From the NCBI RefSeq assembly GCF_052425735.1, contig NC_135763.1, forward strand, positions 32,736,001-32,800,000: a DNA stretch of 64,000 bases, given 5' to 3'. Each line of letters opens with the position of its first letter. The stretch's first letter is position 1. Both the position numbers and the translations under genes were made by a program. Under the pieces are notes generated by a model, which saw nothing but the letters and a program-made list of their open reading frames with translations, searched no databases and was not told the origin of the DNA. The stretch is from Oculina patagonica (lineage: Eukaryota). Below are positions 15,301 through 61,811 of the stretch, piece by piece.

Positions 15301-18300
15301 ACTTTCAGTCGTCCAGTGCTCTATAAATTTGTTTTTCCGCGGCAGCCAATCAGAGTTCGCCGTGTTCGGTTTGGTTTGCATTTGGATCATTTTGCGCCTC
15401 GGCAGATTGCAAGGGAGAGACATCGCGAGGTACAGTGTATTGGATACTGGATTATAAACATACATAGCCAAAACAGAGGTATGACATTTACGATGTAACT
15501 TTTTGAAAAACATTTTAGAGAAGCTTTTTTGTTGTTTATACTGGGAACTGAGGAGTGCTTCTCAAGTTTAACCTACATCGTGTATCTGACTGGTTGAAGC
15601 AAAGCATTTTGTCAAAACAAGTGTTTCTTTGAGCTAGGAGGCTTAGTTTATTATAATTTTCAAGTGTTTCACGAATTGTTGGAATATTGCAGTATGTCTA
15701 GCGTTGTTTACATATTTTATACTAGCTATACAACATGTACAAGTAAGCTCGGTGCCAAGATGTCTGCTGCTCGCTGTCGACTCAACCGAATGGCCGCACG
15801 TATCGAATACGAAAGTGAAAGGAAAAAACCAAAACGAAACAAAACAAAGCAAAAATAAAACATTTAAACTGAATATAAGAATTGCTTCTCGTAATTTATA
15901 ACGAGTTGACGTGGCAGATTCTAGAATGCTTATATCTGAGTATCAGGCATTTTTGTCATTTTAGTTCACGGTCGATTTGAATTCTACCTCGTTTGCTTTT
16001 TTCACGCGTACGTGCAAGCATTTGTATATGTGTTTAGTGCTGAATGAAAGAGTTTTATCGTTTCACAGTTGCGGTAAGAGCTATGTTGGTTTGAAAATAT
16101 CACTACATGTAGCTGTGTACTTACATCGAGATATTTGTCTTCATTCTGACGTCGTGGTCAACTGGTGCGCTCGTGCAGCTATATAGCCCTATTTCGCCGT
16201 TGATTTTCGGCGTGAACAGAACGTGGTAAATGCTTCATGGACTAACTGAAATTTCGAATTAATTGCAGTAAACCTTTTGTGCGGATCTCTTCTATCTATG
16301 CTCCTGGTGGTTCAATTTTTTAAGTTACATTGCATTGCAGTCGAGGTTCCTGTATTGTAAGAATAAAATGTCACTCCAGTGTTCTCCTTAACTTGAATTG
16401 TGCACTGAATTCTTCAGCCAAGATGGTGATGTCCTTTCCCAGTTCTTCAGCCCACTAACTTGGCCATAAGTTAGTGGGCTAGAGGCCTTCGCTTGCAAAC
16501 AAGCACTCTCTTTATAGGAATATTTCAACTGCGTCATTGTCGCCTTGAGGAAAAAAAATTGTTGTAACCTCATGTGCATGTGATTGGTTCAATAATATCA
16601 CATGAGAATTGAGGAAACCAATAGCAATGAAGTGTTTTGAATGTGCGCAAGGACCCGCAGATGCCTTTGTCGTGCTTGTATGATAAGTTCAAAGATGTGA
16701 CTTGCTACTTATAAATTATTCTATTTTGGGTGTGCAATTAGCCAATAAATCGTCCTTGTGTGAGTTCGAATAGAAATGTCTTGACAGAGAACCTCTTAAT
16801 ATTAAATAGATAATTACTGACGCTCACAGCATTATTGGGTATATTGCAGGCAGCTTCGGCCTGCGCCTGTGAGGCGAAGTAATTTTCTATTATAATTATT
16901 GACTCTCCTAAAACCCTATTTTTTCTCTGTAAACTACATGGTCGATTTCAGTCGCTTCCACACTGATGTTTTGATTCATGGCTGCAATATTCGATATATT
17001 GCAGAGAGAAAACAATAGGATTTTTGTGGGTCAAGAATTATTGATGTCAGTCGACTGTTCACAGATTTCAATATTATATATTTAAATACTCGAGGTTGTT
17101 TACAAGTGTTGATTGTTGATTAAGGTTAATAAACTGCTGTAGCGAATTTTAAAAAGCTGATAGCCGTGTCTGAAGCATTAGCCCTTCATGACTTTGCTCT
17201 GACAAAGGCGCAGCTAATGCTTGAAACATCAGGTTTTCAAAATTTGCTATGGCAGTTTGTTTACCTTCATCAACTTCTAGTTGATAATTGACTTGGTGTT
17301 TCACTTAATTGCCTGTTGATGCGGTACAACAGTTCTTTTAGAAATTAATAACTTAGTTCATATTAGCTGTAGTTTGTGACCGCACGTGATCGGCCTACCA
17401 TGCTGCAAACCCATTCTCTCTCCAGACAAAGTGGGCAGTAGTTGATACTCGTACATGTATGCCTTTCATTGTTTGTCAACATAATGAAATATATTTGCAG
17501 TGACTTTTACTGAATCCCCACAGGGAAGTTAAATTCATCTTTTGCGCAAATTTTCAGTTGTGCAAAATAGTATACCAGTCTTCAACAATGAAAAACAAGA
17601 TCGAAGTATATTCAGCAAATGTAAAGAGCAGACAAAACTAGTATCACTGCAAAATGTGGTTACAGTTAAATTTAGTACATGTATGTATGGTGTGTAGTTT
17701 TAAGTGATTTGATTTTGCTTTGTCTTGTTTAGTTGTTTGATTATCATCACAATGGGTCCACCTCTGTTCTCATGTATGGCATGGGACCAGATTAGAACAT
17801 TCTAAAAATAATTATAATAATAATATTATTTTCTTATTGGATATTTTGTTGATAAGGTCAGGTAGTTGTAAAGAAGTCTAAACACACACAATTGATTTTT
17901 TATTCATTTTTTATAATTCTTGATTCTCCCTACTTTGTTCATTGAGCTAGAAAACATTCCCCTTGATGTTAAATTTAGTTTATGAAACTGCTGTGTAAAT
18001 AAAGCAATGTGTTGGGCTTTCTGCCAATGTCAATCTGTTTTCTGCTGTGGCGTGGCATGGCGTGGCGCCAGGAAAAGGAGCTTTTTTGTTCTCATTGTTA
18101 TCTTTTGACAACTGGGTCAGACAAATGGGATAAAAGATAAACAGAATTAAAGGTCACAATGAAATGAAATTAAGATTCCTGTGGTCACAGATCATTGTTA
18201 CGGTAATTTAAAATGTTGTGCATAACATACTGACATGCTAAAAGGCTGTTTCTAGGGTTTGCAAATGTGAAGTTTTTCACATTACATGACTTTTGTGCAT

Positions 18301-19490
18301 TGCAGAGATTTGAACACTAGATTATACCTTTTGTAAGTTACCAGATCTGTAAATGGATGTGTTATTAGTTTTGTTTGGGAAGCAGGCAGCAGTCTTGTAA
18401 AATGTAGTTAATTTGTGAGATCCCTTGTTGTTCATGCTTTATCTCACAAGGAAAGAAAAAAATGCACCTTGTTACCTTTGTCAATTATCTTAGAATTTTC
18501 AAAGTCAATAACATATATGTTCACAAGTCCATGCATGTTTGGAAATACTGGAGTCTAAGCACACTTTTTTATATCAGGCATAACCAATGGGAATTTGATA
18601 AATCACATTACAGTGTACATTGATCATCATCCAGAGTTTAAAACTTTGGAACAGGAAACTCTTGAAAGCAATGAGCGATTGAACAATGTACTTTATTCAG
18701 AATATAAACTGTGTAAAAATACAAATATATAAACTAGCAAAGGTTCAGGGTTGTCAAAATGATTTGAAGTAGCAGGAGTAGACGGCACCACGGAGGCAGG
18801 AGACCCCCCCAGCATGCAGGGGGGGCAGGGGTCTGGGGGCCACACAGCCCCCCTGTGGGTACAGGGGCAGTGCCACTATGGGGGTCCAGGGGGCAAAGCT
18901 ACACTAGCTGAAATTGCCTTTCGTCAGAGCAATTCTTACAATTATATATCTCGCTTTCTAATGGAAAATTTAGTACTATGACTTATTATAGGGTTTGTCA
19001 AGGCTCATTTTCGCTAGCCCGCTCTTTTTTTCTCACTTTCCAAGATTTGCCTTGTGTACTGCTACACGTACTGTTACACTGCAAAACTGACTTTAATCTG
19101 AATGAATGAAATTCAAAGCCCATAACAACGGGTAATCACCCATCCAAATATTAACTCCGTCCAGCAGAGCTTTAACAAAGCAAATGCTTTGATTGTGGTA
19201 CAGTGTATATGGAATTACTCTAGTCTTTTAAGGCCCAGTAATATGGGCAACATTTTTGCCCTCAATTGCCCTTGCTACTGGTATTATCATGCATCATATT
19301 CTAAAACCTAGGTGTCCTCAAATTTCCTGAACCTTTATCATTTTGGAAATGAAACACTATTTCTTTTTGAAATAGCTCCTTCTTGCATCTAAAACATATT
19401 TTCTTTCTTTTTGCAGGTATTTTGGCTCAACTGGTTGTAATTTACTGCACTTGATTGAAGAATCTTGGAGAAGACACTTTGTGCACAATA

Positions 19491-20381
19491 ATGGCACCGT
19501 ACTCTGCTGAACAACTTAACTATTTCAAGTTTGCTTTTATGGTGCTAAATATGTTCCCAAATGCCCTGCGGCGAGTCTTTGTCTTCATGTGGGATAACCT
19601 GTTTGCCCATACACCTGGTTGTCAAAAATGGGATGACTCTGCAGTGTTAAGAAGCATGTTACTTGCAAAGGAGGGTGGTAAGACTAAACACATACCAACT
19701 GATAAATCTTACATGAAATGGGACTTTGCTGCTCTGTTTCAAGCGACTCTCTTTTCGAAAACCTTCGCTTTGTCAGATGGGCATGGAAAGCTTCATACAC
19801 TATACCAGTTATATGTTAAGCCTCCTCCAAGTGGGGAATTTCATGACTCTGTTCAGAGTCCCACTGGCAACACAGCTGAGACAACTGCCTTAGCATTGGA
19901 TCAGCTTCGCTTGTTACGAAATGCACTTTGCCAGATGAGTACCCAAAAGATTGACAAGACGACCTTTGATTTTTATATGAAGTTGGCAAAAGATGCCTTA
20001 ACTGCACTTGGACAAAACAGTATTATGAATGGGGATACTGGAAAGCTGACTGCAGAAGCCTTCCCTACTGCTAAGATTCAACAGTTGGAGTTTGACTTAG
20101 AGAGAGAAAAAAGTGTTGTCTTAGAGTTAAAGCAGAACGTCAGTCACCTTAATAATAAAAGCAAATCTCAAGTTGAAAATCAAGTTTCTAGTAATAAATC
20201 TTGGTGTTCCCATATGGCCTTCTCATTTCTAAATGATCTAATGTGCATACCATCAGAGGACCAAAGTGATGAAAGACAAAAGTATCTAAATGCATTCTTT
20301 AGCCATTTACAGCAGCAAAAAATGGATACTTTGGAGAATTTATATGATGCAAGCAAAAAGCCGCGTATGTATCTTATGTAA
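19491..20381 (+). CDS. Gene A 5' ORF: DZIP3-like HEPN domain plus short coiled coil (296 aa), ended by a frameshift-derived stop
   Basis: Acceptor TTTCTTTTTGCAG at 19416, ATG at 19491. MAPYSAEQLNYFKF...WDFAALFQATLF...LALDQLRLLRNALCQ...FYMKLAKDALTALG resembles the HEPN_DZIP3-type N-terminal domain common in cnidarian NLR/TPR proteins (recognised by eye). The last ~60 codons are already homologous to gene B. Confidence 0.7.
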   Translation: MAPYSAEQLNYFKFAFMVLNMFPNALRRVFVFMWDNLFAHTPGCQKWDDSAVLRSMLLAKEGGKTKHIPTDKSYMKWDFAALFQATLFSKTFALSDGHGKLHTLYQLYVKPPPSGEFHDSVQSPTGNTAETTALALDQLRLLRNALCQMSTQKIDKTTFDFYMKLAKDALTALGQNSIMNGDTGKLTAEAFPTAKIQQLEFDLEREKSVVLELKQNVSHLNNKSKSQVENQVSSNKSWCSHMAFSFLNDLMCIPSEDQSDERQKYLNAFFSHLQQQKMDTLENLYDASKKPRMYLM

Positions 20382-22437
20382 AGAGTGGATATCTGGCAGA
20401 GCTGTATTTTATATTTTGACTTCGGATCATGTGCCGAGCCCTTCAGAAGCTGACAAAAGCCTGAACTCTTATAGTGTGTATACTACACCAGAATCATACA
20501 GTAAAAGAGATGCAAATATGTTCCTGCTATCACCAAATGACCACAAAGAGATCTTTCATTTTGGTGTGGAAGACTCCAAGAGCTTTGGAAATGAAAGAGT
20601 TGAGTCACTTGCAGCTCTGCCTTGCACGAGAGTGTTCACATCCTAATTTTGCAACATAAATTGAAAAAAGTTTTTAAAGATGGTCAGGATTTTAACTTGG
20701 AACTGACATTGCCAGCATCTGGTTGTGCTATTTCTTCACTGTGCAACCAGGTTGACCAACTTCCTCTTCTTGTTGAGCAGGAGTTATCAGACTCATACAA
20801 AGAGTGCAGCAACATTAACTCTGTTGTTAATCCTTCTTTAATATCATCTTTTAAGCCTTCGATGCATGTTTCATACTTTTCATATAGATTATCAAGTCAG
20901 CGCCAGGCAGAGTTTGTCTTTGATTACTTGATTTGTAGCTTACATGTTGGTAAGACACTGGCACTAACTGGTGTGCAAGATGCAGTGATTTCCTCTGTGC
21001 AGAATGAAGCCTTTTTCATTTTTCAAGAACCTTTAGGCAGCAATTGTTCTTTATCCATTGTTGCCGAGAAGAAGTCAGTTACTGTGAAATGCCGCACTGT
21101 AAGTCAATCTGAGTCAAAATGTATTTGTTCATCAGTAAGAACTGCCCTAGAGAATACAATGGAATCTCTGCCTTTTGGTGTCAGTCTAAGCTTGAAGTCA
21201 GTTCTGCAGTTGCCTTGTGAGGAAATAGTTGCAGTGGTTGCTGTAAAGAGAGAAACATCCTGCTCTAGATTTGCACCAGAAACTTGGAAGTCGTGTGCAT
21301 GTGCATGCGGAAGAGATCCTGAAGATGTCCGAGGTGGGAAACAATCCAAGGCCATGTCACGGAAAATGAGGTACATGAACAGTTTACTTTGTAAGCAGAC
21401 CTTTTTATTTTACCTTTGGTACCTAAACCTTAGGGGAGTTGTAGCATAAATAGGGGATTCGTTGAGGATTGGAGAGGAGAGTTTGTTTTGACCGGAAAGT
21501 ATAGTAGACCCCACCCTCTGGTAAACTAAGTATTTAATTTAAAAATAATGTGATATTACAGCTATAATCTGCCCGGGGGGGGCCCGAAAAATGCATGAAT
21601 GGCGGTGCCATTTCCCGAGAAGTGATGCCATATCGGAGTGGGTGGAGGGGGGGGGGTCCAACAAGGTGACACTTTTCATTGCTTCAAGCTTGATAAAAAA
21701 AATATTCCTGAGAGGCGACAGGTCTTTTATAGATAAGGCAACCCCTTGCCTTCTAATGGGAGTTGCTGCTTTACAGCATTTGTGGGAGATGTCACCATTC
21801 ATAAGTGTTGCTGAGTTGTAGGCTCTCTTGCACAGGATGTTGTCTTCTGGAAGGTGTCCAAGGGTAGAGGTTAACAACAACAACAGCAACAATGTACATG
21901 TACATATACCATTTACAATGTACATGCAGAGATAAATATACTGTTCTCTGTTATTTAATTCATGAATTTTCTCTTGCTTTATTAGGATGAGGCAAACACC
22001 AAACATGCTGACCTTGGAGATGACCAAGTACACCCAGTGGTTGAGCCTTTGTGGTGCATTCTTGAGTACCCAGGCTTAGACAGCAGTTTCACAACATCAG
22101 ATGTGCAAGCTTCAGGCAGCAATGAACATGTTCCCTACAGACACTGCCTGTTTTGACGAAAGCAATGAGCTTAATGCCTCTTTGTTATCAGTTGACTCCG
22201 CATCATCCCTGAACTCGTACCCTCCAAGCCCATCTGATCCTGCAGATGAGATACCTGTTTTCCCCTCAAGTATGTCACCAGCTTCATTTGTTTGCAGTGA
22301 ATCGGGTTTGACCTTACAAGACAAGCAGTTATCTGTTGGAGGCAACATGCTCCAAGTTGCCATGTTATGATGTCAAGTTATGAAGAAGGTTTAAGTTCAG
22401 GTCCAGAAGAAGACTGCCTGATGCAAAAGCAAGAAAA
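20200..22437 (+). pseudogene. Gene A disrupted exons homologous to gene B's unnamed domain and Ser-rich exon
   Basis: Homology to B is split across frames. WISGRAVFYIL..NMFLLSP lies in ORF 20290; RSFILVWKTPRALEMKELS in ORF 20474; GQDFNLELTLP..HVSYFSYRLSSQ..VKCRTV in ORF 20622; SLLSVDSASSLNSYPPSPS in ORF 22101. Conserved donor AATGAG|GTAC at 21370 and acceptor at 21985. In-frame stops include TAG at 22077 and TGA at 22368. Confidence 0.75.
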
Positions 22438-25400
22438 GTGGAGCCATTAGAAGATACTGTTGAAGGGACTCCAGAAGATCACAAACATGGTGCGCAGACT
22501 GTTCATCCAGGCCACAACACTGTACCAGAACCTCAGGGAACTCCAGACCCATCTTTTCCCACAGTTTTACAGGGAAGTGAAAAAGCAACCATTTCCATTG
22601 ACAACCTAATTAAAAAGTTACAAAGTGATGTTGCATTCTATCAGGATCAATGTGATGAATTGAGGCAACAAAATAGCCAGCTGGAGGAGAAGTGGAAGCA
22701 GAGTGAAAGAGTACTCCAGGACCTACAGGCTGAAGTAGGAAGACAGCAGTTCCTTGAGTGTAGAGAGAAGCGCAGTGAGAAAATTCTGCGGTCATCCATG
22801 GAATATGTGAGCGAGCAGAACAAGTCTTCCACAGCCAGTGGTGGAACTTTTGCCTTTCCTGGAATGGAAGGAAAACTTCTTGGTGGAGAAGGTCCTCTAC
22901 AAGAGCCATGTAAGCTAAACTTACATAAAGGGCTCCTTAATAATTTGCATAATAGGACTACATAAAATTCTGATGTTAAGTGCGCCCTCCACCAAAAATA
23001 AGCATTTTATAATACCTCCCCCCCCAAAATAAAGCTCTCAAACATCAATCCTTCTTATAAGCCCATGGGCTATTAAAGTTTATTAGGTCCTAAACAGAAG
23101 CGACTACTCTTGAGGTTGTTTTGTATAATTTTTACTGGATATTTCGGGGACTTTCAATGTTCCCTGTTAACTGTAAAACTTAAAGATTTATAGAAAATTA
23201 ATGTTCCAGATGCTTATTCCTTTCCAAATGTACAAGGCCAACATTTTTTTAAACTTAAAAATTCCATTTTTACATTAGCCTGACGTAGAATACATGTGCA
23301 GTGTATATGCTCACAGAAGCCCAGGTTTAGTATCAGAATTATATACAATCATGGGTAAACAACACCTAGCAATATTCAAATGGGTATACCAGCAACATAC
23401 TGTATCTGAAACAGTACTTGTTTTTACCATTTTTACTGCAGGTTTTGCACTGCAACAAAGACTCCTGGAAATTTCAAACTCCTTATCAGAAGCTGAGCTA
23501 GGGCAGATGAAGTTCCTGGCCAAACCTAATATCAGTTGGGTTCGACTTGCCAAGATCAGGGAGGGTTTTGAGCTGTTCGAAGAATTGGAAATCAGAGGCA
23601 AATTGTCATTGACCCATGTGAAAGAGCTACTTCAAGGAATTCGACGTTTTGATCTTCTGGAGAAACTTGATGTTCCTTTAGCTGACAGTGCAGGAACTGG
23701 TAAGAAAAACTGTTTTCTCTCAAGGTGTACTAAACTGTGAAAGTGTAAATACATGAATGAACCAAGAGTAGTCAACTTTGTTTGGTATGAGATCGTTGCC
23801 AAGTTAAACTGTATATTAAGATAATAAAACTGTTGCCTGGGACGTACATGTATAGTTAACAGTACCACAACTTTCTCATAGCAAGTCGTTAAGTATACTG
23901 TAACCAGATTAATGCTCCAATGGGCATTGTTTGTCACACAATTAAGATACATTTTGTACAAGTTATAGAACATTTTTGGTGGCTACCACCCATATCCCTC
24001 TCACATTTTGACAACAAGAATAAATCTAAAATTGTAATAAGATGTCAAGCAAGCAAACTAATAATCGGTTGTACAAAAGTAAAAATTCAAAAAACGTGAA
24101 TTATATCAATGCCTAAACAACCAGTGAAAAGACAAACTTCCCCAAAAATCCCAGAGGTAAATTCCAGAGGTAAATTTATGTTGCCACATGCAGTTTACAT
24201 AAGATTGTTTACTCTACATGTCACAATTTTACGTGCGTTAGTGGGGGATTATTCATTCATAAACAAGCTGCAATGGCGGTTGTCTAAAGATAGCACCTTT
24301 AAGATTCTAATGTTTTTTTTTATTTCACTTTTGATCACTTAATTTATAGCATGGTATCGTCCAAATGATGAGAGAAAGTTGGATAGAATTCCATGTAAGA
24401 AATCACCAGGTAAAGACTCCAGTTTATCACTGCCATCAGTAGTCATCCATTCAGAAGAAGAAAAACGGGATGTATTGCCCAAAAGCCATGATGATGCAGC
24501 TAATGAACCTTCAGATGGATTACATCTGCAGGATAATGAAGAGAATGACAGGGTGTCAAGCTCTAGTGAAGCAGACTCTGGTTGCAACTTGTCCAGTGGA
24601 AACTCAGAAAACAGTGGAGGTGACATGGATGCCTTGACTATGAATGCTGATTGTGACGACTCATCCGTACAGAGTGAGTCCAGTGCTGAAGAACACACTC
24701 GCTTCCCTGCCTCATCTAATGGTGGTTTCCTGTCAAATGAAAGTTCTACCACAGCTGATAGTTCATCTGAGTTATCAGCTAGCTCTGAAATGATTGTGCA
24801 ATCCTTCAGTGATGATTCAACTTCCTCTTCATGCACCTCACAAGATGTGTGTGTTAGCGCAGTGAGGGTCATGCAAGATCTTCCTTCTGATGTGAAGAAT
24901 CGAGAAAGCTCAAGTGATAGTTCACATAACCCAAAAAGCAGCGAAGAGGAGATTTTGGATTGTTCTCCGTTTCCAAATGATACAGATGAATGTGAAAGTG
25001 AAGGCATGGTTACTGCAGAAGCATGTGGTAGAATGGAGAAAGTCTCGGAGTCTTCTGGTGACGTTTGCGATGGTCCAATGAAACCACCTCATTTGGAGGC
25101 GAGGTGTGCTGCTGGTGTAGGAAAGGATGTTGTAGACAGTGGTCCTCTTCATGGTCCTAACAGGCTGCGAAGTCGCTCAAATTCAGGCCACATGCCTGGC
25201 TTAATGAAAGATGCTCTTCCGGATGGAGACATATCTGTGGAACAAAATTGGTCTGGTGCACGCAGTGGTGTTGGAAAAGACTCCACAGTAGATCATTCGG
25301 TCTCTGATGTAAGCACACAATCAAATAAATGGGAGCGCTTAGGAGCTAGACCAAGGGACAGACCCCCTGTGAAAATGGCCCCACTAGCACCCTCACTGGT

Positions 25401-39581: not shown

Positions 39582-42500
39582 ATGTCTGCAAAAGACACTG
39601 CAGATGGTTGTTCGGGCCTCCTAGAGAAGCTACACGCTTTTTTGCCTCATGATAAGATTTTGGTTGGAGTTAACAACTTTCAAAAGCCTCTCAAACTCCT
39701 TGCTTCGATTGATGGGCTAGGCAAGGGCCCAAGGTTCTTTAAATCCATACAAAGCTATGTTAAACAGTCTATTCTGAAACCCTTGAGTGATTGCCAAGAC
39801 AAGTTTATTATTCTAGTTCACCAAGATGATGCCTTTAGTAAACTTAATGTCCTTTCCACCTTATGTGCACTTGCTTATGACATGGGTGACAAAGTTTGTT
39901 TGGAAGAAATAGCAGATCAATATCAACACTACGTTGGTGTTGGCCATCAGGTGAACAACCTTGGAGTGATGTTTACTGAGAGGATGGACTACAAGAGAAG
40001 TGAGACTTGCTTTGTAAGTGCCAAAAGATGCTTTGAATATGAACATGACAATCTGGGAAATGCTGTTGCCACTTTGAACTTAGCAATTCTATACAAGCTC
40101 CTTGGAGACTATCAAAGTGCATGTTCTTGCTGTGATGGTGCAGCTTCCTTGTGCCATGATGTCTCAATGAGAACAACAAACGATGTTGGCCTGCTCTGGA
40201 AATTGCTAACAAGAGTTGCTGGTTTGTGCCAAGAATTTGGAAACTACAAGCGGTATCAAGATATTCTACAACTTGGTGTGTTCTATGACATTGGCAGTGT
40301 CAGTGAAGCCTCCCAAGTTAACTTGACAAAGCAATTGATGACTTTGCAGCTTCAGGAACAGTGTGGTGAGAAAATTAAAGGTGAAGAACTGGAAGACTAT
40401 GCCTCCTGTTTGTTTTTGTTGATGGATCAATCCAGTACAGAAAAACTTTCCAAACCAGAGTTGATAAATGCTGACTTTATAACAATAGTTATGACTGTGG
40501 CAAAGATGTACCGTGATATTGATCACCTTGAAGAAGCATGCAAGTTACTAGAGAAGCTTGAAGCTACATTCCTGCTGGTACATGGCAGAAAGCACTCTCT
40601 CTATGGCTCATTGCTGTACCAAATTGGTAGCTTTAAACTTGGTGCTGGAAACGCAGCTGAAGCTTTTAAAACTCTTCAACAAGCTGAAGCAATTTTCGTC
40701 CATAACTTTGGCAAAGGTCATCACATAGTTGCATCATGCAAGAGTTTATTGGGTACCTGTGCCCTGGTGAAAGGCCAGACTAAAGAGGCATCTACTCATC
40801 TAACTGAAGCTCTAGTCTTGTTCAAGAAAATGAACCATCATCACCCAGAAGTAGCAGAGATATTTTTAAAGCTTGCCCTCCTGTCTAGTGAAGAAGGAAA
40901 TTTCCAGAGTGCCAAAATAACTGTGCAAGAAGCAGTCAATATTTTCATATCAGCTTGTGGTGACGTCTCCTTAAAGACAGGCAGTGCATACTTTCAAGCA
41001 GCAGTGATCTTGCAGAAGGCAGGAGAATCTAGAGCAGCTGTGGACAAAGTGAGGAAAGCCATTGATATCTTTCTTCAGCTTGGGCTGCGATGTGACCATC
41101 CAGATGTCAAGACTTGCCGTAGTTTACTTGGAGCATTGCAGCTCTCCCTGGGCGAGGTTGATGAAGCAGAGGAACAATTTACTGAAGTGCAACAGCAGGT
41201 ACCCTTACAAGATGAACCTTGCTTGACAGCGAAAGTCATTGCCCCTGAAAACACCAACATGTTCTTTCAAGCCAAGACTGGCTGTGGTACAGGTACATGT
41301 AGATACATGGGCCCCTGTCTTGGTGCTCAAGTGGTTTCTCTTGTCAATCTGGTGCGCATGAAAATGGGCCAGGAGAGAAGAAACCATCTGAATACACTGC
41401 TAAGCTGTTTGCAAGGGCATGACACAGGGGAGCCAATAGTATTAGATTTTGCAGGCCAGTCTGTGTGTTACATCTCACATCAACTTTGGACATCTGGCAG
41501 ATGTGTATACTGTATTGCAACTTCAGCTCCTCCGCCAGACTGTTTTCAAACTGATCATTCCATGAATGCTGATTATACATCATTGGAGTCTGAAAGTAGC
41601 AAACATCCTAATGTGTTCTTGTTGTCACCATCAAATGGCTATGGAAGAAGGCCATGTTCTATTCTGTTGTTGACGTTTCCTGAAGGTTTGGAAATGAAAG
41701 AGTTAAGCATCTCTGCCCTCTGTGAGAGTGTTAAAATGCTGTTTTTGAAACCAAAGTTTAAAGAAGTTTCTAACACAGAGGGGCAGGACTTCTACATGGA
41801 ACTGACATTGCCAAAAGATCCTTTTGCTTCTTTTTCACTGTCTGCTCAGATTGACCTCCTTCCTCTTCTAGTGAAGCTGAAACTATCAGACCTACACAAA
41901 GAATCTGGCGACATTGACTCAGTTGCCCATGCATCTTTGACCTCTGTTGTTAAGCCTTCAGCCCATGTCTCATACTTTTCATACAGACTTTCCAGTCAGC
42001 CCCAGGCTGAGCTTGTTTTTGGTAGTTTGATTTTCAGTTTAGGTCAGTCATTAGCACTTGCTAAGGTGGAAGGGATTGAAGTTTTTAATGGTTCTGCTGT
42101 GGATGATGGAGAATTTTTCCTTTTTCTGGAGCCAAGCAATTCCTCTATATCTGTTGTTGTGGAGAAAGAATCTGTTCTTGTGAAATGCCGGACTGTAAAT
42201 GAGTTTGAGTCACCTTGCATTTGTTCACTGGTAAAAAACATTTTGGATTGTACAATGGAGTCATTGTGTCATGTGGTCAGAGTGGCATTGGAAGCATCTA
42301 TGCAGTTACCTTGTGATAATGTTGGTAGTGACTGCATGAAAGAGTCAGCAAACTGCAGTTGTGGTTGTAGAGATTTCCAAAGTGAGTCTTGCTCTGGCCA
42401 TTCTTTGGAAACTTTGAATTTGCGTGCACACAAAAGAAGCCAAGAATTGGAATCTTATCACCTGGAGGGAAACCCATCTGGGGTAGAGTTGCAGAATGAG

Positions 42501-45500
42501 GTACCTAAAGTTTAATTTGTAAGCAGACTATGCTTGTTAATACACTGTAAAATGATTAGCTGGGTATAGTATGTCAACGATGGAGTGATTTTTAATGACT
42601 GCCATAACTAAACCATTAACCATAATGACAAAAGCTACAAAAAGTGCCAATCAGAATTTGATTTAACAACAGTGAATAATTTTAAATGCAATACTGTAGG
42701 TGTGAAGTGTAGGATGTACATGTATATGTATGTTACTTTACCATCTTAACACTTTACATCTAACCCATTCAATTTTAGCCATTGGAAAGACACTCTTAAG
42801 TATTTACTGTCAAACTTTTGTCAAACAGACACCTTTGGGGAAATATCACTCAGAGAAGTTTTCATATAAACTACCTTTCTTGCAAGTTTAAATGTGTGGA
42901 CAAAAATATAAAATAGCTTGGCTTGCCATGTCCACTGACAATATATTGAATTGACACCACAGTTTAATAACTTACCACCAAAATATTAGCTGGTGAAAGA
43001 TGTCACCTTGGGAAGTGTTACTTTTAATGGGGGTGGTGGCTTGATGAGGTACATGTATCGCTTTACATAATAGGAAGTGTTGTGACATAGGATTGAAGTG
43101 TTGTCTTAATGAAAGACCTCAAGAAGATTTTGTTACGTATTTCATTCAGTAAAACAGTGCTTTGTTTTTATAGAATGAGGAAGACATCCCATTTTATGGC
43201 CATCCTGATGACAAAATTAGTACAGAGGTTTGTGTGAGCCTGCTGGAATGCCTCTTGAGTAACAGACACGTTTCATCAGAGAGGCAGCAATCAGGCACTG
43301 GTGAGATGTCGTCAACTGATGCTTCATGTTTGGATGGAAGTATGCAGCTTAAGAGCTCTCTGTTATCACCTGGCTCCACCACATCACTGAACTCATTGCC
43401 TACAAGCCCATCCAATGCTGCATATGAAATGCCTGTGTTCTTGCAGAACATGTCACCATCTTTGGAAAAAGTGGAAGCCGAATCTTGGGATGAGACAGAT
43501 GATTCCAGTACTGGCCATTCGTCTGAGAATTCGTCAACTTCTTGTGTTGGTTGCAATGAATCATCTTTGAACTCGCAAGAGAAGTTATCCAATTCAACTT
43601 TTAGAGTCAACTTGCTCCAAGATAGCTCTGGATATGGAGAAGGTTTACCTTCAAAAGAAAGCTTTAATGATGTGGAAACAACACTGACCATGCAATTTAA
43701 AGATGGTACTGGATTAAGTAAAGATGAAACTCGAGTTCTTAAAAGTGAGGGTGAATATTTTCAGAGTCAGTGCTATGAACTAAAGCAGCAAATAATTGAG
43801 CTGGAGGAGCAGTTGCAACAATGTGAGGCAGAGAAACAGCAGCTTGAATTAGAATTAGGAAGGAAGTCTTTCTTTGAAGATAAACAGAAGCGCAGTGAGA
43901 AAGCTTTGCTGTCATCCAGGACACATGTCAGTGAGCAGAGCAAGTCTTTTACAGCAAGTGGTGCATCTTGTGCTTTTACCAGTATGGAAGGAAAACTACT
44001 GGGTGGAGGAAGTCTTCAACAAGAGACAGGTAAGTTACTGAATACTGTGACGTTTCTTCCAGTGTTTGCAGCAACATAGCCTGCGAGCAGGCTCTCTATT
44101 CGGGGGCAACGTGAGTATTGAACTGCTCGAGCGCCATCCCGCGAGTGCCGAAGGCGCGAGTGCGTGGGCGAAGCGGGCACGCCGAGGGAGAGCCTGCACG
44201 CGCGCCATTGAATTTCAAATCCGGCCCCTCGAAATGTGACAACTTGTTGACAACTCGCTACGCTTCCGGTGTCAATATATAGATCGAATGCTCGCGCGTT
44301 TATTTCGAAAAAAAGTTGTAAACAAAGAGAGTGAATGTTACTTTATCTGCAAGTGTACATTTTTGGTAAAATATGGAACTGGTAAATCGGTTCGCATGTA
44401 AACGGAAAATTTATTTGAAGCGTCAAATCGCGATGGGAGCCGCGGACAAGTGACGACAGATGTACGAACAAATTGAAAAACAATTCGCGATATTGTCTAG
44501 TTTGTCCAGCCGTGTGTTCGATTCCTGTCCCCAAAAAAATCAGAAAATCGAACTTAACTAGTGAGCATCACTCTGCGAACGGCATTTGGAAAGCTGCTTT
44601 ATTCTCCTGCGCGTTTCGTCCGACCGTCGCGGACTTCTTAGCCGATGCAAATATTAACTGCGTACTGACGCTCGTAACGCCAGTTAAATCTCGCAAAGCA
44701 ACACAGTTCAAGTTCTTCACCTGGCCCCGGGCACCTGGTCTTCAATTATGCTGGAAAGTGGGCATATTACTAAAACGATAGTGTCTGAGAGTCGCTCGTA
44801 AACTTTCTTCTCCACCATTGCCACTGCAAAGAGTTGAAATACATGTATGAAGCAATTGCCGTAACCGGTTTGGATAACCGCAAAAACATCTCGTCCCTCT
44901 AGAAGATCATTTACCGCATCTTCCTGTTCTTGTTTTAAGTTAAGGAGATCGTTAGAATCAAGCGAAAGTTTCCAAAATGCTTCATGATCGCTGCTGAACG
45001 AACTCGCGTGCCTATTCACGGACGCCGGCCGTAGTTGATTTGGCTTTGATGTGGACGCTGGTTTTTTCTCACATTAATTGAGTCTGTCATTTTTGACCAA
45101 TCAGAGTGCTGCGTTCGTGGACGAACGCGCCGGATTTAAAATTCAATAGCGTGCGTGCAGGCTCTCAATTTTAATTGCGGGCTCGCTTCGCTCGCCGACT
45201 CGCGCCTTCGGCACTCGCGGGATCGCGCCTTCGGCGCTCGAAGAGTGCAATATTCACGTTGCCCCCAAATAGAGAGCCTGCTCGCAGGCTAGCAGCAACA
45301 TGCTTATAAAACAAATTGTTTGATCTAAATCAAGCATGAATCATGCATGTGATTTTTCTGCGACAAAATTGTGCTGGTATAAATTGGACCAGTGTCGTGT
45401 TCTAAGCATGTAACATCCACTGTTGTAAGCAAATATCATGTCATATTTATTTTCCCCTTACGCTGGTGCTTCATAATTATATAAGGTACCTTCTACAAAT

Positions 45501-48500
45501 ATGCTACAAAGTCACTTGAAACAAATCAGCAGTTTTATGAGTGCAATTCTTGTTACAGTATATAGCACACAGGTTATTCATAACGTTCAGCTGCCTACTT
45601 GGTGTATGTACATGTACCTTTTTATATTTGCAAACATAACTTACAACTTACATTCAGTAACTTACAAACAGCACAATGCTTAAGGTTATTCCCCAGTATT
45701 GCATGGTGCTTCCCTACTGCGCATAATTTCATGCATGATTAGTGTACATGCACCAAAAATGGCAGCTTTTTCTTTACGGCTGGACCTTGCCAGACAGGTA
45801 AATCATTATTTTTTCGTAAATGAGTATTGACCTATCATTCTATCATTTTTTCTGTTGTTTCGAATTGAGTAGTAACTTTTTTCTGTAGAATAAATATGGA
45901 CCAATTCTCAGTGTAGAATAAGCAATAATCGTCGGAAACGCAAGTTAAGCAAGCCATGGTGACTATAAACAAGGTGCTGTTGCTCGTAGACTAACACGGG
46001 CACCCCCCCCCCCCCCGTTTTTATTTTCAAAATTTAAGTTTCTATAACATAAACAATCAATAGGCAAAATTTAGCAAAAATCTCAGTGCAGGTTCTATTT
46101 CAGTGGAATAACCTTAAAACAGTATTTTACATTACTAGCTTACAAAACCTTGCTTACAATGTTACAATACCTGATAACATTGCTGTACAGTACGTGCAAA
46201 TTATTGCTTTCAATATGGTACATGTACATTAGCTATTAAGTTACAACATTTCTTACAGTGCATTATCTAACAAAATTTTTAAGCACACTGAATTATAAAA
46301 GAGTTATATCTTGGGATGTCTTTCATTAAATTTGCAGGGCCAAATCAAAGAATCTTACCACCACCTTAACTTAAGCACTCTTGTTCTCTTGATCAGGTTT
46401 CTCACTACAAGGAAGACTCTTGGAAATCTCCAACTCCTTGTCAGAAGTTGAGCTGGAGCAGATGAAGTTCCTGGCCAGACCTAAAATCGGTTGCGTTCGA
46501 CTTGCCAGGATCAGGGAAGGTTTTGAGCTGTTTGAAGAATTGACATGTACCTATGTTAGAGAGCTACTCATAGGAATCCAACGCTTTGATCTTCTGGAGA
46601 AACTTGACCTGCCTTCACATGACAAAGAGGAAAGTGGTAAGTCAAATGCAAAACAAAAGAGATAATACTACGAGAGCAGCTGAATGTACATGTATACCTT
46701 AGTGATTTTTATTGCGACTCTTTCATTGCAGGTATTTCATTGGTGTTTGTGTCATAGAACATCACATTGTCACTTAGAGATAGGAAAATTTGCTTCTTGG
46801 GTTGAAAAAAAAAATTCACTTGTTTGCTACTCTCACTTATGAAATATTTTTCAACACTCAAAAGGAAATCTCTGTGCAGTCATTTCACATCCTCAATTTA
46901 TGTTTCTCAGTCAACACAATGATAACAATAGCAAAAACAGCTAACCAATGGATCAGTAGTCTTGATTTATCACCAAATTCCCATAACTTACGTTAATAGC
47001 AAAGATGTCAATCAGTTAGGAGAGTTGATAGTTCCCTCTTTTTCTGTTAACCTTTTTTGTAATGAATGTCTATTTTACTGTTCAAAGGTCATAGACAAGA
47101 TGGTGAAGTGAATGAAGACAACAATGGACTTCAAGAAGAACATTTTACTGCAGCTTTACCGGGTGGAGAATGTAGTGCCAATGACAAAATGGTTCTATCA
47201 ACTGCAGATAGCACACAAGGTTAGTAGGCCTTTTTATTCAACAAGACACTTAACTCATGCAGTATTTCTCTCTCCGTGCAGTCAAACTATAGCTAATATA
47301 CATGTATGAAAAACACACAAAACAAAGACATTTACACTTGTTACAAAAAAATTGAAAGTTACTTCCAGTCTTTTATGCGTTCTCGTCCCCAGAGTCGCTT
47401 GTCCCTCTTAGCTGACTGAGCCTGGGGCTCGAGGAACAAGTGGCTCTGGGGACACTTGATTTGATTGGCTAGTTTTTTTTTACAAAGGAAATTTAAATTT
47501 AGAAAATCAAATCAACCTTTTTAAAACCCCTTTGCTGAAAGGGATTTTACTATGGTAGAGACGAGTTGATAATATTTTTGTGGTAGTTATGTGGAGGTTT
47601 GGTGGGCTAATGGTTTTGAATCAGACTAAAGATCTAGAAGTTGTCAGTTGGAAGTCTGGCAATGTGTTATGCTATTCAGCAAGACACTTAACCCTTAGAC
47701 ATGCTTAGAGTATCTCTTTTTCACAGCGTTGAAACATTATTGATTGAAAAAAGTAAATTGGTCCCTTGCATTTTTGTAGGTTGAAAGGTTTGCTTTTACT
47801 TTGTTTTTGTTTTTGTTTTTGTTTTTTTTCTTTTTTCGTTTCGTTTTTCTTTTTTTCAAAGGAAGGCTGCCCTTTTTTGTAATATGATGTGATATGCAAA
47901 GAATATTGTTCAGTGGCAGAGCCAGACCTTTAGAAAAGTGGGGAGCCCGATCATCCAGACCCTGGAATAAGTGGGGAGGGGGCGCTCTCGAAAATAATTT
48001 GTCACAGCCCTACTGGCCCTCTTTTTGGCCTAAAAATGAGGTAGGGGCTGGGGGGCCCTCCTATAGTTCCACTTCTTTTGTTAGCACAGTTGGTATTTTC
48101 AATATGTCATTGATTGCTGGAGCATGAACTACAACACAAAGAAAAAGTTGATTTTATGTGCCGCCATTTTATTTATGAGTTCCTTTTATATTTATTATAG
48201 ACTCATCAGGAGACAGCCAATTTACCAATAGAAGTACAGAAGGATCAGGTAGTATTAGAAGAAGAGAAGATCATAGTAGCTCTTCAGACGAAAGCGAAGT
48301 GGTTGAGGCGAACAGTCCCACAAGAAACTCTTCAGCATCCTTGAGTATGTGGGAACGTTCAGGGGCAAGACCAAAGGACAGAGCCTCCATGCAAAGTGCC
48401 CCAGGGAAGTGGTTACTGACTGAAAAAGTACAGCAAGACCCTGCTGGTGTTGATGACATCCTCGCAAGGCGCCATTGTCAGGGCATAATAGAAAACAATG

Positions 48501-50071
48501 AGTCCATGCCAGTGGGAGCTGAAGCCTCGAGAGTGGCAGATTCTACCAGTACACCTGTCAGTGTTTGCTGGTGGGAGCGGTCTGGAGCTAGACCAAAGGA
48601 CAGAGCCCGTCTGCAAGGGGTACCAATAGAGTCATCACAGGCTGAACAAGTAAGGCAAGAACCTCCTGGTGTTTATGAAGTCTCAGCAAGGCACCAATGC
48701 GAAGGTGGGACAGAAGATGACGAGCCTATGCTACAAAGAACTGCAGCCTCAAGAGTGGCAGATTCCACCAGCACAGTTCTGTGCACATCTCTGGTTGTTC
48801 ACAGTACATCACATGGTGATACAGAGCAGCTTGACACCAGGACGGATAGTAGTTATGATGAAGATGAAGAATGTCTGCCAGTACCACCGCATTCAGCCAC
48901 TCTCCCTACTGGCGTTAATGACTGTATAAGTGAATCTCTAGAGACCACAAACAACAGTCGCCTTGCCACAAGAGAAGGTATGGAACAGCCGAACGTTGTG
49001 CAAGGTATTGCGCGGGCGCTAGCTCAGCAACAAAGGGAGAGAGAAGAGCAAGATAGAAGGTGAGGATGTTTAATTTTATTTCTGAAGTAAGAACTTCATT
49101 ATAGCAATAGTTCTGTCCATCTGTCAAAGACCTGAAATTGTTCACTGGCCAAAGTTGGAATTAATTTTTCTTCTGTATGCTATTTACAAGGCTAAAAGGT
49201 TAAAAAATTATAAAATTAAAAAGTTGAAACCAAACGTTTTCGGCTGTTTGCCATCATCAGGGTTAAAAAATGACCATCCGCACGCATGCATAAATCTCTT
49301 ATGTAATTCCCGTTGGGAAAAGTTCTGAAACATAAGAAATAACTTGTTTGTTCAAGCTGGGGCGGAATTGTTGGATCATCAGCCCCTCAACGATCCTACG
49401 CTTGTGGAATGTTTGTGCTGAGAGGAGAACACACCAGGTGAAAGAATGTGAAGGGTTTTCCCGCGGGTATTTTGCAGGTTCAGAGGTGTGAGCAGGATTT
49501 GAATGTTCCGCAATTCGCACTGCCAAGTTTTTTCTTCTGTTTAGAAATTATGTGGCACTTGAACATAATGACTTTGAATTTTCTTATTTCCATGGCTATG
49601 TGTTTTAACTCTGAATCAGAAGTTCAATCCTGGCTCAGGTCCCCAGGTTTGCATGCAATGGACTAGCATCCCATCCAGGGGGTAAAGCAACAGTTCAGAC
49701 TATTAGTAAAGCACCACAACATCGATACAACACATAACACACACATTACTCTTTAGATCTCTTGGACCACAACAAACGTAAACAACCATGTCCTAACCCT
49801 CATATGTGATTTGTTTGTGTTCGTTTTCATTGACTGGGTTGAGTTAAGTTTTCGGTGAAATATTCCACTTTAACAGCAAATACCATGCATGTCTTTCTCT
49901 GATGTAAAAGTCCCGTCTAGTCGTCCGGGACTAGTAGATTTTGCTCTCTTAAAGTAACTTTTTATGCTCACTTGCCCATTATTTTAACAACAGGTAAATG
50001 ATGAACTTTCCTTTTACGTTTTAAGACTTAGGGCCATGTGTCCTCACTCCGGGCTGATTCCTCGACTGTGA
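39582..50071 (+). CDS. Gene B: TPR array - unnamed domain - coiled coil - DED - disordered tail (~1670-1680 aa); paralog of gene A lacking CHY-RING
   Basis: Phase-compatible exons: 39582-42500 (acceptor 39542, in-frame TGA upstream of the ATG), 43174-44029, 46397-46636 (DED), 47088-47219, 48201-49059, and a tentative 50026-50071 (alternatively read-through to TGA at 49063). It has ~42-aa kinesin-light-chain-type TPRs, e.g. HPEVAEIFLKLALLSSEEGNFQSAKITVQEAVNI and HPDVKTCRSLLGALQLSLGEVDEAEEQF. Confidence 0.85.
44077..45291 (-). mobile_element. AcademH-like non-autonomous DNA transposon with a RecQ helicase remnant, in intron 2 of gene B
   Basis: TIR TAGCCTGCGAGCAGGCTCTCTATT..GGGGCAACGTGA / TCACGTTGCCCC..AATAGAGAGCCTGCTCGCAGGCTA. 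Perfect 9-bp TSD GCAGCAACA at 44068-44076 and 45292-45300. The minus-strand ORF LKQEQEDAVNDLLEGRDVFAVIQTGYGN..IVLVICPLSSIIEDQV carries RecQ Q/I/Ia motifs. Confidence 0.85.
46397..46636 (+). CDS. Death effector domain exon of gene B (6-aa internal deletion relative to A)
   Basis: FSLQGRLLEISNSLSEVELEQMKFL...GFELFEELTCTYVRELLIGIQRFDLLEKL. The exon is 240 bp versus 258 bp in A. Confidence 0.85.
48350..48790 (+). repeat. In-frame 222-bp (74-aa) tandem duplication in gene B
   Basis: WERSGARPKDRA...ASRVADSTST occurs twice, with the Trp codons at 48350 and 48572. Confidence 0.9.
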
Positions 50072-56534: not shown

Positions 56535-59305
56535 TGGATACGCGGAGACGTGGATACGCATTTGAAAAGAACAACCTACCCTTTAGATAAGGTAGGTATA
56601 ATTCTGAGCGGATACACAGAAACGCAGTAGAAGAAAGCAATATAGTCTTTAGATAAGGTAAGTAAATTTTTGACTGGACACGCAGTGGATACGCAGTGAA
56701 TACTCAGGGGATATTCAGTAAATACGGATACGCTGTGGATACGGGGTGGATACGTTTTGGATCAGGAGTAGATGAGCAGTGGATACGTTATGGTTACACA
56801 GTCGACACGCAGTGAATACGTTGTCAATAAATAGTAGATTCGTGGCCGATACGTGGTGGATGCGGAATGGATTCGTAGAGGATACGCAGAGCATACGCAG
56901 TGGATAAGTGGTGGATACGCAGTCGATACGGAGTGGATGCGCAGTGGATACGTGTTCGATATGCAGTGGTACGTGGTGGATACACAGACGATTCCTGGTG
57001 GATATGTGGTGGATACCCACTGGATACGTGGTGGATAAACATTGGAAACGTGGTGGATACGCAGTGCATACGTGGTGGATACGCAATTGATACGTGGTGG
57101 ATACGCAGAGGATACTTGGTAGTACGCATTGCATACGCAGTGGATACACAGTGGTGGATACGCAGTGCATTCGTGGAGAATACGAGAATACGAGTGGGTA
57201 CGTGGTGGACACGCAGTGGATACGTGGTGGATAAGAAGTGGATACTTGGTGGGTACGAAGGGGAAACTTGGTGAATACGATACGTGGGGGATACAAAGTG
57301 GATACGTAGTGGATACTTGGTGGATACGCAGTGGATACTTGATGGATACGCAGTAGATACTTGGTGGATACGCAGTGGATACTTGGTGGATACTTGGTGG
57401 ATACGTAGTGGATACTTGGTGGATACGCAGTGGATACTTGATGGATACGCAGTGGATACTTGGTGGATACTTGGTGGATACGTAGTGGATACTTGGTGGA
57501 TACGCAGTGGATACTTGGTGGATACGCAGTGGATACTTGGTGGATAGACAGTGGATACTTGGTGGATACGCAGTGGATACATAGTGGATACGAAGTGGAT
57601 ACGCAGTGGATACGCAGAGGATACATGGTGGTTGCGCAGTGGATACCTAGTGGGTATGCAGTGGATACTTGGTGGATACGCAGTGGATACATGGTGGATA
57701 AGAAGTGGATACTTGGTGGGTACGCAATGGATAAGAAGGGGATACGTGGGGGATACAAAGTGGATACGTAGTGGATACTTGGTGGATACGCAGTGGATAC
57801 GCAGTGGATACTTGGTGGATACGCAGTGGATACTTGGTGGATAGACAGTGGATACTTGGTGGATACGCAGTGGATACGCAGTGGATACATACTAGTTATG
57901 CAACGCTTTCGAGTGGTATACTATGGAATATCCCACGAGTCACTTGTATTTTCTCGGTATACACACGAGCCTTGGTGGATACTTGGTGTATACGCATTGG
58001 ATACTTGGTGTATACGCAGTGGATACATAGTGGATACGCAGTGGATACTTGATGGATAGCCAGTGGATACTTGGTGGATACACAGTGGATACTTGGTGGA
58101 TACGAAGTGGATACTTGGTGGATACGAAGTGGATACTTGGTGGATACGCAGTGGATACTTGGTGGATACGCAGTGGATACATAGTGGATACGCAGTGGAT
58201 ACATAGTGGATACGCAGTGGATACTTGGTGGATATGCAGTGGATACTTGGTGAATACGCAGTGGATACTTGGTGGAGACGCAGTGGATACTTGGTGGATA
58301 CGCAGTGGATATGCAGTGGACACATAGTGGATACGCAGTGGATACATAGTGGATACTTGGTGGATACTTGGTGGATACGAAGTGGATACTTGGTGGATAC
58401 GCAGTGGATACTTGGTGGATTCGCAGTGGATACTTGGTGGATTTGCAGTGGATACGTAGTGGATACGCAGTGGATACATAGTGGATTCGCAGTGAATACT
58501 TGGTGGATATGCAGTGGATACAGAGTGGATACGTAGTGGATACTTGGTGGATACGCAGTGGAGACTTGGTGGATACGCATTGGATACTTGGTGGATACGC
58601 AGTGGATACTTGGTGGATACGCAGTGGATACTTGATGGATAGGCAGTGGATACTTGGTGGATACGCAGTGGATACTTGGTGGATACGAAGTGGATACTTG
58701 GTGGATACGCAGTGGATACTTGGTGGATACGAAGTGGATACTTGGTGGATACGAAGTGGATACTTGGTGGATACGAAGTGGATACTTGGTGGATACGAAG
58801 TGGATACTTGGTGGATACGAAGTGGATACTTGGTGGATACTTGGTGGATACGCGGTGGATACTTGGTGGATACGCAGTGGATACATAGTGGATACGCAGT
58901 GGATGCTTAGTGGATACGCAGTGGATACTTGGTGGATATGCAGTGGATACAGAGTGGATACGTAGTGGATACTTGGTGGATACGCAGTAGATACTTGGTG
59001 GATACGCAATGGATACTTGGTGGATACGCAGTGGATACTTGGTGGATACGCAGTGGATATGCAGATGATACATAGTGGATACGCAGTGGATACATAGTGG
59101 ATACTTGGTGGATACGCAGTGGATACTTGGTGGATACGCAGTGGATACTTGGTGGATACGCAGTGGATACATAGTGCTTGCGGAGTGGATACTTGGTGGA
59201 TACGCAGTGGATACATAGTGGTTGCGTAGTGGATACTTGGTGGAGACTTGGTGGATACTTGGTGGATACTTGGTGGATACGCAGTGGATACTTGGTGGAT
59301 ACGCA
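56535..59305. repeat. 11-bp satellite GTGGATACNNN (mostly alternating TTG/GCA, giving a 22-bp dimer)
   Basis: More than 200 monomers; degenerate at the left, homogeneous at the right. Interrupted at ~57890-57972 by unrelated sequence. Confidence 0.97.
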
Positions 59306-59414
59306 GGGCAACCCTCCTTCCATTTAAACACGCCGTTAGTTAATCACATTGGAAAGTTAAAGCGGTTTAATTAAATGCAGGGTAGGTTCCATGCCTTGTC
59401 TTTTATCTCAGTGA

Positions 59415-60823: not shown

Positions 60824-61811
60824 GCTTTTTACCTGTAGAGTCATCCACAACGGAGTTCTTTCAGAACTGTTTGAGATGCTCACTGGAGTGCGCCAGGGTT
60901 GCTTGCTGTCGCCCTTCTTGTTCCTGCTTGTCATCGACTGGATAATGCGGAGGACGACAGAAAAACATCAGGATGGCATACAGTGGACACTCACGACCCG
61001 GTTAGAAGATCTTGACTTTGCCGACGACATTGCCCTTCTTTCACATAACCACAGGAGCATGCAATCCAAGCTAACAAGACTGGCAAAGATCTCAATGCAG
61101 ACGGGCCTTAGGATCAGCAAATCCAAGACGAAGGTGATGAGGGTTAACACCAAGAATGCAGATAGGATAGAACTAGATGAGGATGAATTCGACGAGGTGG
61201 AGGACTTTGCGTACCTTGGAAGTAACATCAGCAAGGACGGTGGATCTGATCAGGACATACGAGTGAGGATCGGAAAGGCAAGAACTGCATTCACCATCTT
61301 GACACCTGTTTGGAGATCAAAAGTGATTTCCAGAAAGACCAAACTACGGTTATTTAATACCAACGTAAAGTCAGTCCTCCTTTACGGCTCTGAAACGTGG
61401 AGAGTAACAAAAGCGAACTCCACCAAACTGCAGACCTTTATCAACAAATGCCTGAGATCCATCATGGGCATCCACTGGCCAGAGGTCATAACAAATGAAG
61501 AGCTTTGGACAACAACTGAGCAGGAAAGGATCAACATCCAGATAAGAAGGCGTAAGTGGGGTTGGATTGGGCACACCCTCAGGAAAACAAACTGCAATGT
61601 CACCAAGCAGGCACTGAGATGGAACCCACAGGGGAAGAGGAGCCGAGGCCGTCCCAGAAACAGCTGGAGGAGGACGGTAGATGACGAGGCGAGCAAAGCA
61701 GGCTACACCTGGACGCAGATTGAAAGGATAGCCCAAAACAGAACACGATGGCGAGCAGTGGTTTCCGTGGACCTATGCTCCATGGGGAGCGAAAGGGTTT
61801 AAGTAAGTAAG
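60824..61811 (+). mobile_element. 5'-truncated RTE-clade non-LTR retrotransposon (RT C-terminal half, uninterrupted)
   Basis: The frame is open from 60825 (LFTCRVIHNG..TGVRQGCLLSPFLF..LDFADDIALL..YLGS..KRSRGRPRNSWRR..) to TAA at 61802. (TAAG)3 tail. 12-bp TSD TAATTAGCTTTA at 60812-60823 and 61812-61823. Confidence 0.95.

Follow-up and report, generated by a model that had tools for sequence, protein, structure and literature searches.

Two tandem genes with different heads on a common body

The question raised by this locus is how two neighbouring genes that share one body came to begin, within the same exon, with different N-terminal modules. The window, that is the whole stretch of 64,000 nucleotides analysed here (Oculina patagonica C6:32736001-32800000), contains the tandem paralogs A (ATG at 19491) and B (LOC144656632, ATG at 39582), A lying 20 kb upstream of B, and both genes follow a common exon plan (Table 1). 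The body that they have in common consists of a rare domain of about 340 aa, referred to as domain X, followed by a coiled coil and a DED, after which A runs into the exon of a CHY-zinc-finger ligase. At the DNA level, similarity between A and B spans 20558-21131, 22622-22917, 23439-23704, and 25330-25403. The first exon of A starts after an acceptor AG and ends before a donor GT, and the first exon of B contains an intact ORF of 977 aa with 100% identity to RefSeq LOC144656632, the product of which (P0001) comprises 1683 aa. The DED of A scores above the cut-off of 35.9 bits, and the DED of B (28.7 bits) stays under it. Evidence for the ligase in A comes from the zf-CHY match, the RING (zf-RING_2) being known here from orthologous models, and the large exon of A has the CHY zinc finger, the start of the predicted Pirh2-type ligase part, at its end.

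Table 1. Features of genes A and B in the window (nucleotide positions are those of the window)
Feature	Position	Strand	Description or basis
Gene A first coding exon	19415-21370	+	HEPN, coiled coil, and domain X in a single exon
Gene A divergent DZIP3-like HEPN (predicted), aa ~5-180	19503-20030	+	hhalign, AF2 model, Swiss-Prot fold match
Gene A coiled-coil helix, aa ~193-235	20067-20196	+	last stretch resembling the HEPN-coiled-coil (NLR-head) family
Gene A junction interval	20196-20260	+	resembles neither donor family (profile boundaries)
Gene A domain X	20260-21290	+	window frame 3>1>2>3, breaks near 20368, 20539-20545, and 20612
Gene A exon 2, Ser-rich stretch and coiled coil	21986-22909	+	RNA contigs
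Gene A DED exon	23442-23699	+	PF01335, 53.6 bits; RNA joints 22909 to 23442 and 23699 to 24350
Gene A large exon, CHY zinc finger at its end	24350-26973	+	zf-CHY 34.2 bits; loose ends of RNA contigs map to 24350
Gene B first coding exon	39582-42500	+	N-terminal region, TPRs, linker, domain X
Gene B TPRs, aa ~160-545	~40059-41216	+	TPR_12, 100.9 bits, 5 stretches
Gene B domain X	~41319-42401	+	follows the linker after the TPRs
Gene B downstream exons	43174-44031 (coiled coil), 46393-46638 (DED)	+	P0001 mapped to the window
Gene B further exons	47087-47218, 48200-49060, 50024-50068	+	P0001 mapped to the window

A third tandem paralog of the TPR-X-coiled-coil-DED type is located about 43 kb beyond the end of the window (G000:C6:32842614-32848950, L040+L041); it shows 65% identity to B, with a range of 60-78%, has frame shifts within its first and coiled-coil exons in this assembly, and is spanned in part by GenBank model ACROYT_G023457 (P0051, 601 aa). 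In an intron of B, the minus strand of 44717-45019 carries an ORF of 100 aa with the RecQ-like helicase motif VICPLSSIIEDQ, which is probably a fragment of a mobile element. The window also contains a reverse-transcriptase fragment (RVT_1 and DUF6451) at 60876-61799 on the plus strand and, at 56715-59331 on the minus strand, long ORFs without any Pfam family.

An earlier note on this DNA had claimed that A and B become alignable abruptly at a shared sequence and that no intron lies at this junction. The boundary was examined with two profiles, one of 103 HEPN-coiled-coil proteins and the other of 29 TPR-type relatives. The HEPN-coiled-coil profile covers A-type proteins (HEPN-coiled-coil-X) from aa 1 to about 225-250 and ends at window nt ~20196, and the TPR-type profile begins, at its position ~590, to match A-type proteins at aa ~255-265. 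By these profiles the junction is situated at nt ~20196-20260 in A and at nt ~41320-41350 in B, inside an exon in both genes, and similarity changes within about 20 residues just where the abrupt switch had been proposed. Beyond the junction A contains ERQKYLNAFFSHLQ (aa 261-274, nt 20271-20312) and B contains ERRNHLNTLLSCLQ (aa 598-611, nt 41373-41414). The 8-mer TCTTGGTG, which the note had taken for the point of transition, is indeed present at 20199 and 41318 and recurs at 22878; its significance as a shared breakpoint did not stand, because it is read in different codon phases (TCT TGG TG in A, (TG)T CTT GGT G in B) and the homologous codons downstream of it are 5 nt out of register between A and B, so that it is a chance match and was ruled out as a recombination scar. 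RNA contig X4 is colinear with 19485-21360 and the RefSeq model of B with 39582-42500, in agreement with the lack of a junction intron, and the RNA contigs exclude a hidden intron as well as a transposon at this place. The TPR matches of B occupy the region where A has its other module, and no TPR remnant was detected near A in the window. Of the two explanations that had been offered, an intra-exonic domain swap is supported by breakpoints that lie inside exons in both genes and by RNA that is colinear over the junction of A. The observation of swapped heads on a shared body is confirmed.

The head of gene A and its relatives among NLR-like genes

The head of A had been assigned to the HEPN domains from its sequence alone. 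Scores for HEPN_DZIP3 in Pfam (PF18738) are 17.1-17.3 bits for window A and 20.4 bits for its orthologue P0035, below the gathering score of 27 bits; 20 of 24 members of the head family match PF18738, all under 27 bits, and it is the sole family that is matched repeatedly. At least 150 canonical PF18738 modules, scoring up to 227 bits, are present in the O. patagonica genome, and a profile-profile comparison of A1 with 20 of them by hhalign resulted in 92.9% (E 3.7e-7, 55 columns), the match spanning the catalytic helix (R-x-H) and the next helix. The AF2 model of the head (pLDDT 75.7) shows a helical structure that closes with a long helix at 193-227, and when it was compared with 550,129 Swiss-Prot models, mouse and human DZIP3 were found at ranks 1 and 2 (probability 0.95 and 0.90, TM 0.47 for the top match). 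Exhaustive alignment to the PDB (VIA-align) gave modest Z values, with Csm6 (Z 7.1) and AbiF (Z 6.1) on top and sacsin HEPN, AF_0298, and LsoA further down the list; Foldseek against the PDB returned nothing usable. A CXorf38-like HEPN was not among the Pfam matches or the fold matches of this head. A helical bundle with a chance R-x4-H and no relation to HEPN could account for Pfam matches that all stay below the cut-off, for the empty Foldseek search, and for Z values not exceeding 7.1, but it leaves aside the hhalign match on the catalytic helix, the first two ranks held by DZIP3, the joint presence of the five proteins just named in the VIA-align list, and the invariance of R and H in 103 family members, and it is considered very unlikely. 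On the basis of profiles and structural models, we accept the head of A as a divergent, DZIP3-like HEPN domain that is sub-threshold in Pfam.

A search of the O. patagonica genome with P0035 detected the head (aa 1 to ~230-300) in at least 50 copies, arranged in tandem arrays on C4, C5, C9, C13, and C1, and in the same search domain X was confined to the present locus. At three loci or arrays a NACHT (P-loop) exon is found 350-650 bp after the HEPN-coiled-coil exon, and in the annotated protein P0181 (972 aa) matches to AAA, NACHT, NB-ARC, and nSTAND occur together with the HEPN-coiled-coil head. The head of A is about 55% identical to this NLR-head family, which matches A-type heads with E ~1e-100, coiled coil included. 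It had been noted before that the A/B case resembles the shuffling in cnidarian NLR-like genes and that no NACHT or NB-ARC domain is visible. The Pfam scan of the exons of A and B agrees, as these domains were detected solely in the head paralogs, and the likeness turned out to be stronger than claimed, the same HEPN-coiled-coil module being the first exon of NACHT genes elsewhere in the genome. DZIP3-like HEPN is the commonest NACHT partner in anthozoans according to surveys (Emery 2021, PMC8260672; Noel 2023, PMC10236652), and a HEPN survey described fusions of the DZIP3 clade to TPR, RING, DEATH, and NACHT (Anantharaman 2013, PMC3710099); this kind of event is therefore already known.

In the donor family, whether free or NACHT-linked, the R and H of LRLLRNxLCH are invariant (103/103). 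At 19917-19934 the sequence of window A is RNALCQ, the catalytic H being replaced by Q, and the R-x4-6-H catalytic motif is absent. Among A-type proteins the R...H pair is intact in 5 of 15, and in the rest R is exchanged for Q, K, or W, or H for Q. In the HEPN exon of Porites lobata (L039 3001-3618), which reads YTN...RC, both motif residues are lost. Conservation of the pair would have ended once the HEPN joined the ligase body, and its decay there would indicate a non-catalytic role of the head, which in many species including Oculina is probably a binding or dimerising module and not an RNase.

Reading frame and transcription of gene A

As written in the window, domain X of A is interrupted by frame breaks, the first of which (~20368) is the reason for the stop at 20381, where the interval 19491-20381 ends. 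From these breaks A was at first read as a pseudogene, a reading that was dropped after run contigs proved to lack the extra letters. Contigs were obtained from four runs of four studies, two of them DNA and two RNA-like (zero intron depth). In comparison to the window, each of the four runs is short of 1 nt at 20368, 7 nt at 20539, 3 nt at 20675, and, in exon 2, 1 nt at 22125; X12 additionally lacks 1 nt at 20612. An X12 contig free of mismatches contains 11 gap letters in 20381-20792 (7+3+1), and for the X4 contig the net loss amounts to 36 letters, which is divisible by 3; in X1, X3, and X4, and for the allele closest to the window, the third frameshift was settled just indirectly, via the gap totals of 36 and 11. 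When the indels of X12 are applied to the window, one continuous frame is obtained that agrees with the orthologues. Altogether, short insertions in the window and two T>A changes distinguish it from the contigs of every run (20189, 20368, 20539, 20675, 20880, 21443-21591, 22125). Both DNA runs skip 149 nt at 21443-21591.

RNA contigs X4 and X12 are colinear over the first exon and continue from 21370 (GT) to 21986 (AG) and over the two further joints given in Table 1, and at its 5' end X4 includes a short upstream exon near 15456-15476 that is joined to 19415. By these joints the head exon of A belongs to the DED-ligase transcript, and gene A is expressed in O. patagonica, its first exon being spliced to the exons for the DED and the ligase. 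GenBank model ACROYT_G023453 (P0077, 488 aa) places an intron at 20217-20696 that removes a third of domain X, and this intron is contradicted by the colinear RNA contigs.

If A were a decaying pseudogene, or its junction an assembly chimera, the architecture would be meaningless in the species. Such a view could invoke the three frameshifts in domain X and the one in exon 2 of the window, the false intron that P0077 requires in order to dodge the shifts, and the frameshifts that the third tandem copy also has in this assembly. However, the extra letters at 20368, 20539, and 22125 are missing from four runs of four studies, the frame is continuous with the X12 indels, the whole exon is covered by spliced RNA contigs, the private differences, mainly indels and 2 substitutions, resemble error more than decay, and the junction is kept in at least 16 clusters, so that decay or chimerism is judged unlikely. 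The differences of the window point to indel errors in this part of the assembly or to an unusual haplotype here, and its frameshifts most likely stem from mistakes in the assembly or from a private allele; since the private differences are mostly indels with 2 substitutions, assembly error is favoured over a broken allele and is regarded as likely. The case thus exposes indel problems in the O. patagonica assembly and a wrong public gene model.

Origin of the HEPN head on the ligase body

The N-termini of homologs were surveyed by an exhaustive profile search among 1.84 billion representatives, in which just 22 clusters with domain X were found; those clusters that were checked, either with a domain scan or from where X lies in the protein, are of the TPR-X or the HEPN-coiled-coil-X type. 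Intact ORFs of 606-669 aa that correspond to A-type first exons are present in at least 16 protein clusters derived from assemblies and transcriptomes of other corals. Another coral assembly (L036, L038) has an intact A-type exon with coiled-coil, DED, and CHY exons after it and a TPR-type gene about 10 kb further on, which is the same A-then-B order as in the window. TPR-X is one exon in Oculina, Porites, and further coral assemblies, and TPR-type genes with a full ligase were found in Stylophora (P0185) and Porites (P0214 and P0215). A third context of domain X was observed in P0052-P0064 and at L037 6001-10098, single ORFs of 1338-1373 aa from ENA assemblies in which TPR and X are followed by a GT4 glycosyltransferase.

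The domain X tree comprised 77 rows and came from a quick search, with SH-aLRT as its sole measure of support and the TPR-X-glycosyltransferase group chosen as root; in it, A-type forms a single clade (SH-aLRT 99) nested among 62 TPR-bearing rows. It lies within a well-supported group together with TPR genes of Stylophora/Desmophyllum and of the Oculina type, and Porites-type as well as several TPR-bearing groups, including TPR-X-glycosyltransferase fusions, are placed outside this group. The A-type heads, too, group in one clade (99) when a tree is built from the heads, and the branching inside this clade agrees with that in the X tree; the head tree is unrooted, and the donor family could in principle descend from the A-type head. 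The coral group carrying the A-type was delimited from few anchors (Stylophora, Desmophyllum, Porites, and Oculina). As one A-type clade is nested among TPR-bearing relatives, the TPRs would have been replaced once, long ago, and not differentially lost.

The second explanation in the earlier note had been an ancestral HEPN-TPR gene; on this view the TPRs were deleted from A, which retained the original HEPN, and the HEPN was lost from B. A HEPN-TPR form of the gene does exist: models P0214 and P0215 from P. lobata and P. harrisoni (2379 and 2396 aa) contain a canonical HEPN_DZIP3 (E 1e-46) ahead of TPR and X, then DED and CHY, with RING seen after CHY in P0215, and the HEPN occupies an exon of its own, 0.8 kb upstream of the TPR-X exon. 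The head of A is barely like this exon, however, as the NLR-head profile, which fits A-type heads with their coiled coil so well, matches the Porites exon with E ~0.03 only, and by this comparison the Porites HEPN appears to be of a subfamily other than that of the A head. Moreover, no HEPN remnant was detected in the 10-12 kb preceding B, either in the window or in L038, to go with the lack of TPR remnants near A, and the TPR-type models of Stylophora and Oculina begin without HEPN. Because of the different subfamily in Porites and the absence of such an exon upstream of B, differential loss is not accepted as the source of the A head, and we hold it to be improbable.

The junction, the single A-type clade, the synteny, the splicing, and the decay of the pair are observed; the direction and mechanism of the TPR replacement, and its function, we infer as follows. 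The older form of the gene, restricted to corals, would have encoded TPR, domain X, coiled coil, DED, and a CHY/RING ubiquitin ligase of the Pirh2 type. In the ancestor of one stony-coral group, a duplicate would have lost the entire TPR-coding stretch and gained, in frame and in the same exon, a HEPN and the first ~40 coiled-coil residues from the family of NACHT-gene first exons. As both breakpoints lie inside exons, the swap was not clean intron-mediated exon shuffling; the donor exon usually extends through more coiled coil to a splice donor of its own. The mechanism may have been illegitimate recombination, or capture of an upstream head exon and then one in-frame deletion, the two-step course being equally possible, and the fusion would afterwards have been inherited vertically with the A-then-B order retained. 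Taken as a whole, an old replacement of TPRs by HEPN-coiled-coil, followed by vertical inheritance and later decay of the Arg/His pair in a gene that is transcribed in O. patagonica, appears probable to us. Two independent HEPN recruitments to the gene are possible, and tentatively it might be proposed that the X-DED-CHY/RING body recruited HEPN twice, as a canonical exon in Porites and as an NLR head in the Oculina group, with loss of Arg/His each time. If this were true, an animal HEPN would have been reused as the non-catalytic recognition or dimerisation head of a death-fold ubiquitin ligase, and the design of DZIP3 would have been re-created by convergence.

Several known systems resemble gene A in part. 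Anthozoan HEPN-NLR genes (PMC8260672, PMC10236652) have the head module in common with it, which in O. patagonica precedes NACHT exons, whereas A is without NACHT/NB-ARC and carries the head, with a relaxed catalytic pair, on domain X, DED, and a CHY ligase. DZIP3/hRUL138 (HEPN, coiled coil, RING-H2; PMC3710099) is the best fold match of the A head and is similar to A in its DZIP3-clade HEPN, its coiled coil, and, as predicted for A, its RING-type ligase end; unlike it, A is non-orthologous, possesses a putative CHY/Pirh2-type ligase as well as DED and domain X, and represents a separate HEPN fusion. Porites P0214 and P0215 share with A the X-DED-ligase body, the exon plan, and an N-terminal HEPN without the R/H pair, but their HEPN is canonical and in its own exon and the TPRs are kept. 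RCHY1/Pirh2 and A have the CHY zinc finger in common and differ in everything upstream of it. Nothing specific was found in the literature on the combination of DED and CHY in corals. The A/B case is a real, old, and expressed module swap. Swaps of this kind have been catalogued before for HEPN heads in cnidarians, and what is new here is the ligase body, the position of the breakpoints within exons, the decay of the Arg/His pair, and the other HEPN form present in Porites.

The case illustrates how a coral immune-type effector head probably moved from NLR-like genes to a death-domain ubiquitin ligase, with a single, dated origin and with gene order kept, and the nuclease residues would have been freed from constraint after the transfer of the head. 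A TPR head and a HEPN head on one body also constitute a test pair for the function of the abundant cnidarian HEPN heads. As for domain X itself, its model reached a pLDDT of 66 and Foldseek against the PDB yielded nothing usable; a fold match was obtained for the C-terminal half alone, which resembles the spermine-synthase N-terminal/AdoMetDC-like sandwich (Z 11.1) and the COR of Roco (Z 9.1).
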